A stretch of 63,782 bases of DNA, the filler included, from Intoshia linei (Eukaryota; Animalia; Orthonectida), in assembly GCA_001642005.1 (NCBI GenBank). It is 6 parts of 6 records of this genome, joined end to end, with 100 filler letters (N's around TTAATTAATTAA, not from the genome) between each part and the next. Parts side by side here need not be neighbours in the genome. Positions count along the whole stretch, not along the records: positions 1 to 16,969 come from LWCA01000830.1; 5 more parts are not named here. The stretch is one strand, 5' to 3'. Below, piece by piece: positions 4,732 to 16,969 of the stretch (position 1 is the stretch's first letter; every line of letters begins with the position of its first letter). The position numbers were made by a program, and so were the translations under genes. Under the pieces are notes generated by a model. That model was given only the letters and a program-made list of their open reading frames with translations, was not told where the DNA came from and ran no database searches.

Positions 4732-5443
4732 CACTAATTGACTAATAAAAATTGACTAAAAGCGCAAAATCTCGAAATTTAAATTATATAATAACAATAA
4801 TAATATATATTTACAAAAAATATATATCTTACAGTATAAAAATTCATTAGTACCCACGAAAATACAACATTAATTTCATAAATTTGTGCATGGAAGACTA
4901 CCGTTTCCAATTAAGACGATGACCCGAAATATACGTCCAGGCTTGCAAAGTCATTTTTTGACAGAGAATCTATAGAAGCTATTGATTGGCCTTCGCAAAG
5001 TCCAGATATGAACCCGATTGAACATCTATGGGCTCATATTAAGGTCAAATTGATAAATAAATGCGTTAAAAACAAGACGGAATTGAAACCAGCTGTTCTG
5101 GATGTGTGGAGGAATAAAGACGTGAAATTTTGCCAGAAGCTTGTCGATAGCATTCCAAGACGTGATATGGAACTCTACCGTGCAGAAGGTGGTCATACGT
5201 CATATTAAAAACGTTTTTAAATGAATATTATATAAATGTGCAATACTTTTTCCATGTGTTAAAAGTCTATGAAATTAATATTGTATTTTAGTGGCTACTA
5301 ATGAATTTTTTTACTACAAGATGTATTTTATTGTAAATAAATATTACTATGGTTATTATATAATTTAAATTTTGAGATTTTGCGCTTGTAGTCCATTTTT
5401 ATTAAACAATGTGCAAATTATGCAATACTTTTTTCCAATAGTG
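4732..5443 (+). mobile_element. Internally deleted Tc1-family transposon with long (~150-190 bp) TIRs
   Basis: TA-CACTA...TAGTG-TA ends. 4732-4885 is the reverse complement of ~5265-5443. The interior encodes only the DDE C-terminus (WPSQSPDMNPIEHLW...GGHTSY, ORF 5008-5208). Confidence 0.9.
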
Positions 5444-7802
5444 TATATGTACCTGATTTTTGTCCGTTAGACAAGCCGCCCGAATATGACAAGCTTTTAT
5501 AGATACAAATTTATATGAATCCAGTTGATACATTTCTGCTTTTGGGTGACTATACATTTTCTAAAAGACGATAAATAATTTAAAATTGAAAATGACTTTT
5601 TTCATCTAATAAAATGGGGAATTTAAGAGGGAAAGAAAGTAAATTGTTTAACTAATTGATCAAACAGGTAAATTATTATATTTGTTATTACCAAAAACAT
5701 TCTTTTCGCGTAAAAATATTTTAGTTAGTGGAAAAGTACGGTATAATTAATAAAATAATCATACAAAACACCCATCAATTGCAGTATACGGTTTGTTATC
5801 ATCTTACTTCCATTGAATCAATTTTCCTTTTTACGTTAAAATAAGTAATTCCGAATAAAGAGCAGCGATAGATACGAATTTATCATTAATTACCAAATTT
5901 GGATCACTCTAAAATTATATAAACGTGTAATGTACATATTAAAATTTACATCGTTGAAATAAATATAATTAATATTTTTATCAAAGGTGACATTTTCGCT
6001 CACTACTGGTTCTTTGAAATGAATTAACGAGTTCTTATCTTTTCTATTAATAAAAACTGTATTATTAAAATTTTCGTTTTCTAAATTTCAAATTATTTAG
6101 ACAAAATTCTAATTTTACGAGGACTTTTAACATTTAATATCCGATATTGATATTTGATTATACAGATCAATTAATTTACAAATTCAAGGTTTCAAAAACA
6201 AAAAGATCCAAGATGAAAACAATGAATTCATTGAACATTGACGATATTCGATTTATAAAAAATTATCGGTCTAAACTTAATATTACTAAAAATATAATAA
6301 AAGGTAGACTTTTGGATGTATAATATACATATACACTTTTATTTTTCAAAAATACAAAAATTTCTAAAGAAATGGCACAGGCTAAATTCTAAAATACTTT
6401 AAATTTTGTGGGAATGGTGGATACATCCGTATACTGCCAGTAACCAATTCTTGGGAAGAATCGATAACTGCTATAAGTGCCAATTAGTGGATTTAACATG
6501 AAAATTGATGTAGGTTTTTGTATTTAATGTTTAAAATGGTATTTTATTGCTATTATACCTTTAAACGTTGATGTAACGAGATATATTGACCTCATCACTC
6601 GAATCAGAACAGTATCAGTTAGAAAATTACATGTATATAAAATAGAAAAATCTATACTTAAATGTTTAAAAAATATTGAACAGTATTATTTTAAATAACC
6701 AATATTGAATAAGAGTTAAAATATCATAATTAAAGTTTTAAAATAAGAAAAATGATAGGTTTTTATTAACAATAAAAATAACATTCTATTTTTTAGACAT
6801 TGTAATTTGCAATGCCAGTTTTAGTTTGGATAATGTGTAATATTCAATACATAAATGTATAATTGTGCATCGATAACGGTTTCATTATAAAATTATAAGC
6901 TGGAAATTTTATACCGAAGCTTAATTATAATTATAGGATTAATTAATTTTTCCATGGAAACATAATTAAAAAGTTGTCTACCATCTGTCGAAATATTGAC
7001 AAATTGTTGTTCTTTTAACGGTATAACACAACATTGAAACAAGTCAAATATTTAATAGAAATTTAATTGTATGAATTTCAATGTTTAATAATTATTTCCG
7101 TTTTTAATAGATATGTACCTTCTCCAATTAAACAAAGTCTTAAAAACAGTAGGTTTCAATCTAGGTTGGTGGTTCCATCGAACTTTAGTAAAAATAGATG
7201 TTTAACTTAAAATCATGTAAATTTTTCGGAATTCTGGAAAAAGTGATCACCTTTGTTCTTTTAACTTAAATGATTTTCAGCTACAATGAATAAAAATAGA
7301 TTTAATGTCATTTAAATACAGTCAATTTTGTTCCATATGAATACGAAGGGACCAGGTTTTGATCATGTTCATACTATACTGTAATATAAACGTATATGAA
7401 TGGCGATAATAATATAATTAAAAGTTTCGAAATGTCCAATTAATGTTTATTCAAACAAAATTGTCGTGTTCATATTGAGCTGAGTTCATATTCTAGGATG
7501 TTCATATAGAACAGAATTGACTGTAATGTACTAAAATTTGTAAATCATTTTTGAATCAATCCCTGAACAGCTCTTTTTACTTTTTTCAAAAAGTTTGACA
7601 CTATTGATATAGAATAATTCCTTGCATTAAATATGTCATATTACACTTGTTACGATTAAAAATTTGCAGAATTAGGATAAAAATTTTAATTATTTTAAAT
7701 TGGTATCCATGAGGAGTTGAAATAAATTAGAAATATATATTTGTAGCTGTGTCAGCAGAATAAACATAAATTAATATTTTCAAATCATTTAAAAATTTTA
7801 AG

Positions 7803-10800
7803 ATGAATGAGAGGTTAAATTCGAGAGATTCAACTACACCTGATAAATGTTTGCTTATTCAGCAATTTAAGGTTAGTATATAGAAAATAAAAGGTTTAAT
7901 TTGGATATAGGAAGTTACTGGGAATGCAGATGAAGCATATGTATCATTTCAATTAGAAAAATGCAACTGGGATATATCTGTAAAATATATAATTTATAAC
8001 ATTAAGTTATCTGTAATTTTAGAATGCCATCAACAAACACTACATTGAATCTCTAAATTATGATAATACAAATAGCTTGATGGAAGATATGTATTCGTGA
8101 TTGAAATATATATTATATAGTTAATTTAGGGGAAATTTGGATGAATCTGAAAGTACGATAAAAAGCGAAGATGACAACATGAACAATGAACAATCTACTG
8201 ACGATGAAGATAAAGCAATCACTGACCATAATAACTTTTTTATGAATTTACTACTTATTCCTCTGGAAATTTTGAAATCAGTGGCCAGTACAGCGTTTAA
8301 TATAAGTTTAAGGATTAAAATTCACATTAAATACTGATTTAGTTGTAAAAATATTGGGACTGAATATTAACCAAGTTGGAGTGAGATTAACAGATTCTGC
8401 AATTTGTAGTCAGCATCGTTGTGATTTTAACCATCAAAAATCATATTGCTCCAATTTTAGTGAATATTTAAATGAACGAATTTATTCTAATCATCAACCA
8501 AAAATGGCGTTCTCTGAAAAAAATTTATACGAGGTAAATATGAACTTTGCATTACTTATTGATTAGGTTTTGGACGAAGTTACAGATACTGGAAAAGTTT
8601 TGTTGGCCTTTTTTCACAATGAAAAATGCTCAGGTTGCGTGAAATATTTAAGGTAATATTTATTATTTCATTTTTTGGTTACTTTTGTATCTTTTTTTTA
8701 AGTCGGAATACATTCTGCATTTTCTTAGCAGTTTCCTGGACTTTTTCGTCGTCTAAATCAATGTCTATCTCTTTACCATCATCATCTTTAGGTTTAACTA
8801 CTATTTTAATAATTATCTGTAAATAATAAACTACCTTTTTCTTTTTTATCCATGTCTTATTCTAATTTTTGTTTAACTGAATAACTTATATACTCTAATG
8901 TTTCACGACCTTATTTGTATGTACATTGTACAATTTATTTTATTGATTTATTTTAAAAATATTCCTATTATTTCGTTAATGTTGTTAATTATATTATATG
9001 CTTGAGAAATTTGTTTTTTATTATACATGTAATGTACAATGACAATCTCAATTGCTAATTGTTTGGTCATTTTACTTGTACAATTCCATGAATAAATTTA
9101 CATTTTATTCAGTGTAACTTCAAATCGATTAGTCTGAATTAGATTTATAATATAACCATTAAATTAATTAAACATTACAACTTCATTATATGGATATATT
9201 CATTTTTTAAACTATATTGATTTATTTTTATTTAGAGAAATTGTCACTAGTTCCATTTTGATTGAAAAATTTAGCAATTTTATTGTTTGGGGTTGTAGCT
9301 TTGATGATACTTTAGATGAGCATCAATTTGGTATAGATTTTAATAACAATATTTTATATATATAGCTTCTCAAACTTTTAAAATTGTAAAAATTCCAACA
9401 ATAATTATCTTAGCTCACGTCGAAAGTGCCAATAAAATAATAGGAAAAATTAGAGGAATATCAAGTTATACATTTTTCAATTTAATTTTAATAATTTTGG
9501 TTAATTAATGTAATTAGATTAATTGTATTTGTATTTAGATGTTGATGATGTTAACCATCGCATTGAAATCATTTCGTCTCGGTTTAAAAGTCTAATAAGT
9601 ATTTATAGGCAAACCAGGTATTTATATTTGTGTTAATTAAAAAAAACTTTAGATTAACAATAAAATATAATCGAGAATTACGTGAAATGCAGGACGCTAA
9701 ATACGCCGAATCACTTAGAATTGATCAAGAAAAGGTATGCATTTTTTATAAACCGACTATTAAGAAAGTACACTTTGGTTTACTGTATGTATTTTAAAAA
9801 TAATAATACCATGGTAGGTATTATTAATTTTCAAATTTAATAACTACAGTTTCTAATTTTAAATTAGGATTTCTCGTGCCAAGATTTCAGTTTTACCAAC
9901 CATAAAAGGAAAAATATTTTTAAACTAAATTATGCCATGTAAAATTTAATTTATATGACATAAACCCTTTTTTACAATCCAAAATAACTGAGTTTAAAAT
10001 TGTGTTTGTCGTGATATTTACAAATCGATATAGATGAAGGAAGATCATTCCCTTTAAAAACATTTAAATAAGGTGCGTTACTAATTTATCAAACATAGTA
10101 TATTCTGTTGAACCCTAATTTATATTTTAAATTTAATTAAAGTAAAAAGGTTGAAATTGCATTTTAGTTGTAGTGAAATATTTTTCAATGCATTTTTAAT
10201 TAGATATATTGTAATTAGATCATATTTTGTGATTGTAAGTATATACCAATAATTGAACTTAAAATATATATTGTTTAATCAAATCTGGTATTGAGTGACG
10301 TATTCAGTTTAACATAATGACGTTAAATTTTTATCTAACATTTCATTTTTATTTAGTTATTTTAAGTAGACTGATAATCAAATATATTACATGCATAATT
10401 ATGCATATATTATAATAATTAAGTTAACATTAAATAAAAGTGATCATAATGGCTATATTGATTGATAAAATAAAAACTTTTTAAATAAATTTTTTTAATT
10501 TATTATACCCTTCAGTTTTTATTATTAAGATACTTTAAATCAACTTATTTATTGATATTTTAAGTAAAGTTGGTGAAACTTAATCTTTACATTACTCTAT
10601 TTAATTATTTGTTGACTTTATAATAATTATTTTAAATTTTTCTTAAGTTGCAAATATGTATGTGTATTTTACCCGTTTATAAGATTTTTATATCCATCTT
10701 TTATGGTCAATATTTTTTACTCTAGTAATATTTTCCACTTATAAGTTTCAAGTTCTAGAATAAAATTTGGTAAATACCTCTTGCCTCCTTAAAATTAATA

Positions 10801-11276
10801 TTAATTTTTTAGTTGAAGAAATCCCAAATTTTGAAAGATGAACAACTCAAAGCAGAGGAACAAAAAAACCAAATCATGCTTGATAAAATCAAACTAGAAG
10901 AACAATATAAACAGTGTAGAAATAAAATCAAAAATGAATTTAAATTATCTGAATTTTTCCCAGGTTCTATCATGATTTATGTAAGATTGCCTAATGGAAA
11001 AAAAATTAAAAATTATTTCGAAAAAAATGCCTCTATTACGGTATTTTATTTATATACTGCTTTAATATTTTATTTTAGGAATTGTATAATTTTGTCATTT
11101 CAAATGATCAGTGCCCCAAATTTTTTAATTTATTTATACATAATCCTAAAAGGATTATAAATTTTCCAGTTGATTTGTACATGACTCAACATAAACTTTC
11201 TACTTTTTCAGACAGCCAAATTTCTGAAACTGTGACTATGTATTTGAACGAGGTATATGAAGAAGAAACTGATTGA
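7803..11276 (+). CDS. FAF2: FAS-associated factor 2 / UBXD8-like (UBA-like, UAS, coiled coil, UBX)
   Basis: N-terminal LLIQQFKEVTGNADEAYVSFQLEKCNWDIS (UBA-like), then RELREMQDAKYAESLRIDQEK, then UBX motif IYVRLPNGKKI...F. Short GT-AG introns throughout. Confidence 0.85.
8679..8853 (-). CDS. PEP-19/PCP4-like acidic-IQ calmodulin-binding microprotein (46 aa), nested antisense in a FAF2 intron
   Basis: Exon 8835-8853, a 34-nt GT-AG intron (8801-8834) and exon 8679-8800 join in frame (141 nt). Product: MDKKEKVVKPKDDDGKEIDIDLDDEKVQETAKKMQNVFRLKKKIQK*. Confidence 0.75.
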
Positions 11277-11329: not shown

Positions 11330-12987
11330 TTATTCAACTGGCACAATTCCACTTTTAATTGTGTTTTTATTCCAAGTGTGCAATACTTGAGTAGAAAGGG
11401 GATATTCAGTCTAAATTACCTTACAGATTTAATATTGATTATTAATACCTCTGTGTTATCCGCGTGTACTTTCACGATGATTACGTTGCACGAAGTACTG
11501 ATTAATACAGGAAACTCTTCGGTGCTAGATTTGTGTTAATTGATTAAAAGAGCAATTACCTGTCATATACGTGAAGATGAATTTCATCTGAACTGCTAAT
11601 ATTGACGGAACCGACTCTGTTGGTAATCTAAAGTCAACAATGATAAATTTAAATTATCAATTTACATGAAAATGGGCTCGCTTGCATTTTACTATATCCA
11701 GGGTCGATATGATTGTATCAACGTGTACGTGACATTTGTTGCAATTCTCTAAAAATGTATAATATAAATATAATGGACTCTTGATACCTATCAATGTATA
11801 ATTATGTTTATTCTTTATTTTAATGACCGTTTCAGTGTTGGATATCAGCATACAAGTTTCCGATTTATCTTTTATATCTACTTCTACCGTGTCTTTAACA
11901 AAGTTTTCCTATGTATGATAGGTCAAATTTTATTTATAATAGAAAATTAATTTAAAAATACAATTGTCCATTTCTTTCCGGCATACTGTTTTATTGGTTT
12001 TTTAATTTGAGCTTTAGTGGCAGTTGTAGTAACTTTTGAACCGCTCGTTTTAAGAGTTGGAATAATTTTATCCCCCTTTTTTACATGCTTTAAACCTTCA
12101 AAACTATTACACATAAACTGGAATATAAACCTTTTGTAATATTCAATCCAGAGTTCAGGTCGTTGAATAAACTTGTTAAACCTCCACCAGTCGTCGTAGT
12201 TGTAGTAGTTTTAGGTGCGGCGTCCTCTGTAACTTGAGTTCCATCGTATACTGTCCCCTAAAATATTATTATAAGATACAAGATTTAATACCTTTGGATT
12301 CCATACTAAACCAGTTGTGTGAATTTTTTTGACATATAGAGCCATATTTTTTAAAAAATCGATCCATAGTTGAGTCCAAATGATAGAATCTGTATCATTT
12401 TTCTTCTTAGAATCGACTAGAATACGATTTGTATAATATTGAGCGGCATCGCACATTCCATTAATATGAGGTCCAGGAGTTGGTGTCTAAAATACACAGT
12501 TAATAATTCTACCGTTTCAACAAAATTACCACTTGAACCCATGCAAATGCAGGTATAGATTCTAAAATGTATTTAAAATAAATTGAAATTAAAATGATAC
12601 CAGAAATTGCAGCAAAATAATTTTCGGATACATTTTTCCTGTTATCATTTCTAAAAGCTTGTGTATCGCCAATCTGTTGTGCCAAGGGTTTCAAAATTTC
12701 AGCAAATTGAATCTAATGTGTATGTAAGATAAAATATTAAATAGTAAAATTATACCTCAGTTGGTTTCTTTATTTTTTCTGCTAATGATATAACCTTTCT
12801 AATCTCATTGACTACCTTACTAACAATGTTTACCTAGAATTTTTATTGAGAATTACATCATATTCTTCTAAATCTACAAATTTTAATATACCTGTTCGAT
12901 AATTTTTGGATCTAATGTTTGTGATATTTTAACAAAAGCGTTAAAATCTTCTTCAATCAATGTATCAAATTCAGACAAGGAATTCAT
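11330..12987 (-). CDS. CAP: Adenylyl cyclase-associated protein (CAP/Srv2 family)
   Basis: HFD motifs ESIPAFAWV, PGPHI, DAAQYYTNRIL and HTTGLVWN; WH2 SLFNDLNSGLNITKGLKHV; CARP domain ending TEYPLSTQVLHTWNKNTIKSGIVPVE*. Confidence 0.92.
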
Positions 12988-14950: not shown

Positions 14951-16969
14951 ATGTTGAGAATATGTATTTTGATTGCGCTTCTAGCTGTTTCAATCCAATC
15001 AATATGTAATTTAAATAAAATTTAAATTCATATTTTAAAATACAGATGAATGTGATTTTTCAAAAAATTTATGTAAAAGCAATTCCGACAGTTGGTACCT
15101 ATCGAAAGGTATTATAATAGATGGAGAATCATTGTATGCATATACTGATGCAACCAATTCCATGTATTATTTATAAACTTACTTAGGGATGGGATTCGCT
15201 TAAAAATGATTAACGTTCACATAACAAAAAAACACATTTCCTGATGAAAATATATTGAATAATTTGAATATAATAAAATAAATGAAAAATATATATAATA
15301 ATAATTAAAATATTTTTTAATGTAAATTGCAAAAACACTATATGTATAACGTTATATCTTATTTTTTTGTTAAATCCCATCCCTAATTTAAATAAATGTA
15401 ATTATCATTGTGCATTGCATAATTATAATCCACTAAGGTTTATTATAAATTATAATGAATCCATTATATTAATTTATGAAATGATAGTAATCTTAAAATA
15501 TTAAATATTTAGATTAAGTTTTCCTATTGAAAATCTTTCCGTTTCTTTTTGTATAACATTTGAATATTTCTTAAACAATAACAATAATAAACTCATATTT
15601 GGATCAAAAAATTCCATAAATGGAAAATTCAATGATTGGGCATCTCAGCCATTATTAAATCCAAATAAATGGACTACGGAACAAATTTATCTTGATATAA
15701 AACCATTTATTAATAATAATGTAAATAGAAGATAATATTTTTAAAAATTCTAAATAGATTGGTTTTGTTGGTTTTGTATACGATGTCAATGAATTTATAG
15801 CAATTAAATACATGGAAATGTTTGCTGGAACTTGTGGTAATTTTAAATTTAATTAAATTTTCAACTTTTAGAATAATAATATTTTTAGAGGAAAGAAATC
15901 AACAATATAAACGTAATATAAAAATCATTAAAAACATATAAAATGTATATTATTATGTATTTATATAATACCAATCATATTTAATTTTACTGATAATAAA
16001 AAAACTAACGTATTGAGGGGAAATATTGAAAAATTAAAAAACATTCATGACATGATGAAAATAATTAAAACTTGATGATTTAAATTTAAACTTAACGTAG
16101 ATTTATGAAAACCCCCATGCAGAAATCATTGTGAACATAATAAAATATGATAATAATTATAATTACATTTTGTATACATGTTAATAAAAATGATGGGAGC
16201 GAAAAATTATAAATGATATGTATATGTGGTAAATTGTCTTCATAAAAAAATCGTTTACTGGGAAAATTTAATAGTATATTTTCATGATTCCCGTATAAAT
16301 AATATTCATTGCTTTTACTATATCCCTTACTGGGTTCAAACAAGAAAATGTAAACGGCACATTTGAATGATGCAATACAAATTCTTCACTAATAATAATA
16401 GTAATGTAGTATTAAAATTTTATATTTTTTCTGAAATCACAAAACTGCGGTATACCTATTCAAGTCCGATATTTAAACATAGCTGATTTATCAAAATACT
16501 ATACTTTAAAAATTAGTTTGTACGACGGGAAATATGTCCGCTGTCATAATTATGATAATTGATACATGATAAATGATTTGATTCTTAAATAGTATTTCCT
16601 GCAATATTGTATTATTTGTTTTATTATTATTTTTAGATAAACGATCAATAGAAGATGAATTAGAATCAAGCAATGTTGATGAAATTTTGGCATTTCACAC
16701 TCCATTGGAAATACCAAATATAGTACTAGAAAAAATTATACCGGACCAAGTATATGAATATCGTCATAACCAACACAAAGACCATGTAAATGAACACGAA
16801 AATGACCAGCATGGTATACGTCATTATGGAGAAGACAAATATGTTAATTTTCATGACCAAATTGGTACCCATCATCATGAAAACCGCTACAATAATGATA
16901 ACCATGACCACTACAGGCACCATCATGGCCATGATAATTACGGAGATCATGGTCACGTGGATATGCATA
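14951..16969 (+). CDS. Secreted MAM-domain protein, probably continuing into a KR site and a His-rich tail; 3' end lost in the gap
   Basis: Signal peptide MLRICILIALLAVSIQS. MAM-like motifs CDFSKNLC..W, FCITFEY, NKWTTEQIYL and IGFVG...FIAIKYMEMFAGTC. The phase-1 donor matches the phase-1 acceptor at 16637, which opens KRSIEDELE...His-rich. Confidence 0.7.
15184..15385. mobile_element. Short hAT-like MITE in an intron of the MAM gene
   Basis: 13-bp TIR TAGGGATGGGATT...AATCCCATCCCTA; TSD not preserved. Confidence 0.55.

Follow-up and report, generated by a model that had tools for sequence, protein, structure and literature searches.

Analyses were made of a 63,782-nt window of the genome of the parasitic orthonectid Intoshia linei (assembly GCA_001642005.1; 41.6 Mb, 3,520 contigs, approximately 25% GC), which consists of six parts, the first of them being the 16,969-base contig LWCA01000830.1 (C2183). 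This contig carries on the plus strand a gene with a UBX domain, here called the host gene, and the minus strand of one of its introns carries a short putative gene for an acid-IQ peptide, in which an acidic segment is followed by an IQ-like motif and a basic tail. Neuromodulin, neurogranin, PEP-19 (PCP4) and igloo have been grouped as calpacitins (PMC9618489).

A reading frame on the minus strand of a host-gene intron

The intron that holds the nested locus is 583 nt long, which is unusual for the host gene, whose other introns measure 33-43 nt apart from one of 74 nt and one of 1078 nt (9735-10812). The genome has been described as compact, with short introns (PMC6543705). The earlier note on this DNA had placed the intron at about 8653-9236, and the spliced RNA contigs set its limits as given in Table 1.

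The ATG read on the minus strand occupies 8853-8851; its context, AAGACATGG, has A at position -3 and G at +4, and an in-frame TAA precedes it by two codons. After the ATG there are 16 further coding bases and then the donor AAAAAG/GTAGTT, and the second exon continues in frame to its stop codon, its translation being VKPKDDDGKEIDIDLDDEKVQETAKKMQNVFRLKKKIQK. The ATG, the 34-nt GT..AG intron and the in-frame second exon ending in TAA that had been described earlier were all read at the positions claimed. The unspliced frame of exon 2 is open to 8861 and contains no Met, so that the ATG can be brought into frame only if an intron shifts the reading by one base, as the 34-nt intron does. A second AG at 8799-8798 makes the acceptor a tandem one (NAGNAG); its use would give a 37-nt intron, keep the frame and yield a product of 45 residues, minus one Val, in place of 46. 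In length and ends the mini-intron fits the RNA-confirmed introns of neighbouring genes, which are mostly 33-43 nt long, start with GTA or GTT and end with TAG. Exon 2, with 31% GC, is like the host exons (30-35%), whereas the mini-intron has 15% and what is left of the host intron 20%.

Upstream of the predicted first exon, a TATA-like box suggests, weakly in a genome of 25% GC, a very short 5' untranslated region (UTR), with transcription starting near 8862 and an exon 1 of about 28 nt. Polyadenylation likely occurs at about 8647, 12 nt past the AATAAA, and the 3' UTR would share the last six bases of the host plus-strand exon, which ends at 8652. The plus-strand open reading frame (ORF) at 8626-8826, which had been regarded as a mere shadow of the minus-strand frame, is present (66 aa) and encodes hydrophobic junk.

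Table 1. Coordinates of the host intron and of the features of the nested locus, counted along the window
Feature	Position	Strand	Remarks
Host intron	8653-9235	+	583 nt, GT..AG; joint 8650 to 9234 (cut +2) in spliced contigs of three of three RNA runs
Exon 1, coding part (predicted)	8835-8853	-	ATG, five codons and first base of a split Val codon (MDKKEK-V)
Mini-intron (predicted)	8801-8834	-	34 nt, GT..AG; acceptor ..AAAATAG at 8801
Exon 2, coding	8679-8800	-	residues 7/8-46; stop TAA 8681-8679
TATA-like box TATATAAG	8885-8892	-	32-39 nt 5' of the ATG; regular expression on the minus strand
3' UTR (putative)	8647-8678	-	AATAAA 8664-8659, the sole nearby minus-strand copy
Acidic segment E17-I-D-I-D-L-D-D-E25	8745-8771	-	gapless alignment to the module profile and to PCP4 27-57
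IQ-like motif and basic tail M34-Q-N-V-F-R-L-K-K-K-I-Q-K46	8682-8720	-	gapless alignment

Relationship of exon 2 to acid-IQ modules

The searches with the peptide were performed with exon 2 alone; the 40-aa reference (8682-8801) opens with a Val formed by the last G of the intron and TA, the same residue as that of the spliced codon. A phmmer search against 1.84 billion representatives gave 69 matches at E<=1e-3, and the module EE[IV]DIDLxDPEVxxAAxKIQxxF[KR]G was found in 71 of 75 proteins (the 69 matches and six cluster members), in 1-20 copies each, the IQ parts of which pass Pfam IQ. A profile of 34 positions was constructed using 334 unique acid-IQ modules of invertebrate proteins. Exon 2 aligned to it without gaps at 37.3 bits (model positions 3-31 of 34), whereas the null maximum was 12.8 bits; the null set comprised 408,662 open segments (15 million residues) from the six frames of 20 Mb of sequence generated by an order-3 Markov model of the genome. 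Since its score lies so far above the null maximum, exon 2 is not a chance ORF, and it is very probably a genuine coding module.

Exon 2 agrees with the consensus EEIDIDLDDPEVxxAAxKIQxxF[KR]G at 15 conserved positions, and its acidic stretch carries the alternating hydrophobic anchors Ile18, Ile20 and Leu22. There are 11 residues from the third anchor to [I/M]Q, a distance identical in all 334 modules and in PCP4. The acidic E-I-D-I-D-L-D, the fixed spacing and the MQxxFR with its basic tail, to which the earlier note had drawn attention, are thus a true match to the module. Alignment with single modules showed 62% identity over 26 residues with the last module of protein P0060 (E 2e-9) and 53% identity over 36 residues with the last module of P0053 (E 1e-9); both modules are C-terminal and end just before the stop, as in exon 2.

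The search of the ESM Atlas with exon 2 placed Purkinje cell protein 4 (PCP4) first (0.91, 179 shared features), with PCP4L1 (0.89, 187) and an arthropod IQ protein (0.89) after it. Human PCP4 residues 21-57 matched the module profile at 45.6 bits, gapless and at the same positions as exon 2, while family member P0047 matched PDB 2n77_B (PCP4) at E 4.9e-4, and the direct alignment of exon 2 with PCP4 had a local score of 49, reached by 5 of 20,000 composition-preserving shuffles. Profile similarity to acidic-IQ proteins, named beforehand as a check of the proposal, was therefore found. The named relatives recovered via a profile of small members are igl (Pycnogonum), neuromodulin (insects) and a neurogranin-like protein (Mya). 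By its module, the predicted peptide is a newly found member of the already known acid-IQ (calpacitin) family. Database proteins of 54-62 aa with an apparent single module (P0242 and others) were considered as PCP4-sized relatives and rejected, being internal-Met truncations of two-module proteins.

The IQ consensus (PF00612) is [ILV]QxxxRGxxx[RK]. In M-Q-N-V-F-R-L-K-K-K-I the residues Gln2, Phe5 and Arg6 are kept, while Met, Leu and Ile stand at positions 1, 7 and 11. Several observations weigh against the reading of the locus as a gene for an acid-IQ peptide. The full-sequence phmmer E-values (to 1e-41) are inflated by tandem repeats, single modules reaching 18-25 bits only, for which reason the profile was built from unique modules, and the source proteins of that profile were first found with exon 2 as the query, which is a mild circularity. 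Near-invariant module positions are altered, namely Pro12 to Glu (97% Pro), Ala17 to Thr, Ile21 to Met, Gly27 to Leu and Arg31 to Ile, so that the Pro hinge is absent and Glu25 stands at its position. The Pfam scan of exon 2 gave 0 families at E<=10, PF00612 (IQ) being unmatched, and phmmer against the PDB gave no match at E<=10. The hinge residue of PEP-19, which lies between the acidic coil and the IQ helix, is Pro37, and the substitution P37G cripples its Ca2+ tuning, which is strongly reduced with binding kept (PMC5122967).

A word-indexed search with exon 2 in a collection of 5.8 billion proteins found no protein sharing words, although this collection includes other I. linei proteins (an intronless EF-hand gene of the assembly is 100% identical to an NCBI protein of this species). 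Because there is no public protein match the gene is unannotated, as had been supposed. The degenerate 27-place DNA pattern for DIDLxDxxV matched 29 places in the whole genome, 25 of them in an unrelated repeat and three in non-acidic contexts, the nested locus being the only match in an acidic setting. The repeat is present as about 25 dispersed near-identical copies of GATATAGATTTGAGGGATTTCAAAGT on many contigs (e.g. L018, C236:230-255, and L020, C309:16672-16697); it is possibly a mobile element and is unrelated to the acid-IQ module. The module profile detected no second acid-IQ module in any frame of the 16,969-base contig. When the I. linei genome was searched with P0059, the nested locus was not among the three candidates returned (best E 3.3), a single module being too weak for a genome-wide pairwise search; one of the candidates is a SPA17-like gene. 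The minus strand of L015 (G000:C3392) carries at 131-2074 an open frame of 648 residues with an RIIa-like N-terminus, the IQ motifs AAIKIQSSFRGMKARKEV and AAIKIQAGFKGMKVR and a long acidic tail, which looks like a SPA17-like protein. Its IQ motifs reach 29.4 and 24.7 bits with the module profile, in its C-terminal half, but they are of the canonical IQxxF[RK]G type and have no DIDLDD acidic part, and the protein belongs to a separate family.

RNA over exon 2 and the surrounding gene

The RNA data of three runs (X1, X2 and X3) are spliced transcript contigs, which carry no strand and whose depth is a poor measure of expression. Run X1 contains a separate 153-nt contig at exactly 8647-8799 with a depth of 189, which alone accounts for the depth of the bin; the remaining host intron is uncovered in this run, the depth over 8864-9060 being 0. 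The contig ends at 8799, at the predicted acceptor, and at 8647, 12 nt after the minus-strand AATAAA. The host mRNA had a depth of 645 in X2 and of 654 in X1, yet the nested stretch had a depth of 2.5 in X2. Since its depth is uncoupled from that of the host mRNA, the RNA is not a by-product of host splicing. The end at 8799 may mark the divergence of the form spliced at the 8798 acceptor from a form reading T at 8800, and that at 8647 the divergence of A-tailed and read-through forms; no A-tail was seen on the contig 8647-8799. The separate contig over exon 2 and a short 3' UTR, with a depth uncoupled from the host, supports the independent transcription that had been proposed, in contigs that carry no strand; the RNA would be of minus-strand origin.

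It could be argued that exon 2 is a chance ORF of an AT-rich intron and that the RNA represents a retained host intron or an alternative host exon, given that AT-rich DNA often contains short ORFs rich in Lys, Asp and Glu and that the strand of the contigs is not recorded. This explanation is rejected by the profile statistics given above, and the ESM Atlas named PCP4 without any hypothesis as input. The plus strand has no GT at 8800 and hence no host donor there, and the RNA is restricted to the nested stretch and does not follow the host; we therefore consider a chance origin highly improbable.

A point against the two-exon structure is that none of the contigs listed covers exon 1 or bridges 8835 and 8800. 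The X1 contig ends at the acceptor and the listed contigs leave 8835-8863 uncovered, as would also be the case if exon 2 were the last exon of a larger minus-strand gene, with its 5' exon or exons lying under host exons upstream of 9236 or being trans-spliced, a product of more than 46 residues and possibly a second acid-IQ module, as in two-module relatives. The closest relatives, P0053, P0060, P0064 and P0065, are indeed two-module proteins. Such a larger gene appears unlikely, as the contig holds no second module, the X1 depth immediately upstream is 0 and the nearest upstream ATG is in frame via an intron of typical size with good signals, with a stop two codons 5'. A first exon of about 28 nt might moreover yield junction contigs too short to place. 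Taken together, a real, unannotated, protein-coding microgene for an acid-IQ peptide on the minus strand of the 583-nt intron is the probable explanation of the locus, and its exact two-exon structure is reasonably likely to be that of Table 1.

The host gene itself is defined by eleven plus-strand introns in the spliced contigs of the three runs and by a poly(A) site near 11337. It had been named FAF2 in the earlier note. The UBX domain was recovered weakly in single host exons (half-domain match, 19.6 bits, E 0.001), with a thioredoxin-like match at E 0.083, and the name itself was not confirmed: genome-wide UBX and UBA_4 family searches did not have the contig among their matches, a PDB search with the host UBX exon gave no match and an ESM Atlas search with a host exon, which also served as a contrast to exon 2, gave unnamed clusters only. 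The domain order and the motif SLRIDQEK fit FAF2/UBXD8, which is a tentative identity for the gene.

Other observations were made along the contig. Within the second long host intron (9735-10812), runs X2 and X3 have RNA contigs at about 10046-10242, with loose ends at 9915 and 10100 that continue into unlike sequence, and a repeat or another nested transcript may account for this RNA. At 7369-7525, close to the 5' part of the host gene, the RNA contigs differ at clustered bases, one deletion is present and several ends are loose, which may reflect alleles, a paralogue or a repeat. A single X1 contig of 2,935 nt spans the host 3' end and a convergent minus-strand gene at 11337-12400 (introns at 11411-11787 read CT..AC), and the 3' ends of the two genes meet or overlap. 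Plus-strand open frames were noted at 5008-5208 (..NPIEHLWAHIKVKL..VDSIPRR..), which we take to resemble the C-terminal part of a Tc1/mariner DDE transposase, and at 16687-16969, where a His-, Asn- and Asp-rich frame (..HHHENRYNNDNHDHYRHHHGHDNYGDHGH..) is cut by the contig edge. The Rfam scan of the whole 16,969-base contig gave no match.

Calmodulin and the place of the predicted peptide among calpacitins

Canonical calmodulin exons are present in the I. linei genome. The predicted complex of exon 2 with the C-lobe of calmodulin (P0115, residues 85-156) scored 0.39, the best of three controls scoring 0.02; runs agreed in at least 80% of contacts and the predicted local distance difference test (pLDDT) value of the partner was at least 61. 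The mark used is reached by 51 of 78 solved complexes and by 2 of 108 mismatched pairs, and at scores of 0.60 or below only five of the 78 solved complexes reached it, plus all four mismatches that passed. The support is thus weak; the pass may be a recall of the solved PEP-19:calmodulin complex, and it raises the odds of binding only slightly. By analogy with its relatives, we lean towards the view that the peptide binds calmodulin.

The peptide resembles PCP4/PEP-19 (structure 2N77, with the calmodulin C-lobe) in being a tiny protein with a single C-terminal acid-IQ module and in the gapless order of E-[F/I]-D-I-D-[M/L]-D, 10 residues, [I/M]-Q-x-x-F-R and a Lys-rich tail. The acidic residues are conserved, and the hydrophobic plug of PEP-19, Phe30, Ile32 and Met34 (PMC5122967), corresponds to Ile18, Ile20 and Leu22. 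The calmodulin-bound helix of PEP-19 comprises Glu38-Ala58, the N-terminal tail being dispensable (PMC5122967); Lys26-Lys46 has the same length (21 residues), and the stop follows immediately, at the Ala58 position. PCP4 differs in having 62 residues in place of 46, an N-terminal tail of 29 in place of 17 and Ile in place of Met in the IQ motif, and direct alignment shows a modest similarity. Leu replaces the Gly after FR, which PCP4 is also without.

By alignment the igloo-like modules are nearer (25 bits, 53-62% identity) than PCP4, while PCP4 clusters come first in the ESM Atlas; no tree can be built from so short a module. The earlier designation as PEP-19/PCP4-like holds for the calpacitin module, on the profile and the ESM Atlas, with the qualifications that the closest relatives by alignment are igloo/neuromodulin-like and that the Pro hinge is missing. 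The igloo-type proteins that are closest by sequence (Drosophila igloo; P0227, igl of Pycnogonum; P0211, P0271 and P0275 of insects; P0306 of Mya; P0022 of Owenia) include some C-terminal modules with KKMQ or without Pro, as here. They differ in carrying 2 to 20 modules in 88 to 2856 residues with an IQ that passes Pfam, whereas there is a single module here, which Pfam IQ does not recognise and which departs from theirs at Pro, Ala17, Ile21, Gly27 and Arg31. Proteins P0001-P0021, largely unnamed and from invertebrates or marine eukaryotes, carry up to 20 tandem acid-IQ modules in up to 2856 residues and could be large calmodulin stores; among the papers searchable, igloo was the only member of the tandem acid-IQ family described.

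In neurogranin and GAP-43 a Ser phosphorylated by protein kinase C (PKC) lies inside the IQ motif (IQASFRGH). The peptide shares with them an IQ motif after an acidic or hydrophobic stretch and has Val at the position of this Ser, so that regulation by PKC would not be expected; GAP-43 is, in addition, much longer and palmitoylated. Both proteins bind apo-calmodulin and lower or tune its Ca2+ affinity (PMC5122967, PMC9618489).

The changes at five near-invariant positions, the Pro hinge and the IQ Ile among them, the unmatched Pfam IQ and the weak complex prediction would also be in accordance with a decaying relic of an igloo-like gene, transcribed as a non-coding antisense RNA and giving no functional calmodulin-binding peptide, the more so as orthonectids have lost many neural genes (PMC6543705). 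Both odd states are, however, present in intact relatives: Met occupies IQ position 1 in 3 of the 334 modules, KKMQ being found in P0053, P0064 and P0065 (KKMQACFK in the closest relatives), which gives precedent to the Met that the earlier note had remarked on, and Glu stands at the hinge position in the second module of P0060, which has no Pro. The frame is intact from ATG to stop and stops exactly at the end of the PEP-19 helix, and the plug, the acidic residues, Q, F, R and the basic tail are kept. The GC content is exon-like, the contig depth in one run is about 0.3 of that of a housekeeping mRNA, and orthonectid sequences evolve fast in general (PMC6543705). A relic is thus improbable, and a coding microgene remains the preferred explanation.

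Such a microgene would consist of an ATG mini-exon (8853), an intron of 34 or 37 nt and a terminal exon to 8679, followed by AATAAA and polyadenylation near 8647. Its product would have about 17 charged, disordered N-terminal residues and one 29-residue acid-IQ module, that is, the functional core of a calpacitin. By homology to PEP-19, the C-terminal 21 residues would be helical and occupy the C-lobe groove of calmodulin, the acidic stretch would be held beside Ca2+ site III by Ile18, Ile20 and Leu22, and the Asp and Glu side chains would change the on and off kinetics of Ca2+ or the peptide would buffer free calmodulin. Because of the Glu in place of the Pro hinge and the degenerate IQ (MQ, no Gly), the tuning properties are probably unlike those of PEP-19. 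We tentatively suggest, at somewhat less than even chances, that this is the smallest natural calpacitin yet seen, its 46 residues exceeding the 29-residue acid-IQ core by little, and the sole acid-IQ gene of a bilaterian genome that is among the most reduced. With MQ for IQ and no Pro hinge it may tune calmodulin in a manner different from PEP-19, for instance as a buffer of apo-calmodulin that leaves Ca2+ exchange no faster. If true, nature would have supplied an experiment on the parts that the module cannot do without.

The locus would add a missed gene to the I. linei set and would indicate that intron-nested genes with micro-exons and fewer than 50 codons escape annotation even in a 42-Mb genome. 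Igloo and PCP4 are linked by a large family of invertebrate proteins, mostly without names, in which up to 20 acid-IQ modules stand in tandem. The natural substitutions found here (no Pro hinge, MQ for IQ and an end at the bound helix) may provide a minimal peptide with which the module features required for calmodulin binding could be told apart from those required for the tuning of Ca2+ kinetics. For the animal itself, a neuronal calpacitin-type peptide that tunes calmodulin would have been retained despite a rudimentary nervous system and a heavy loss of neural genes.

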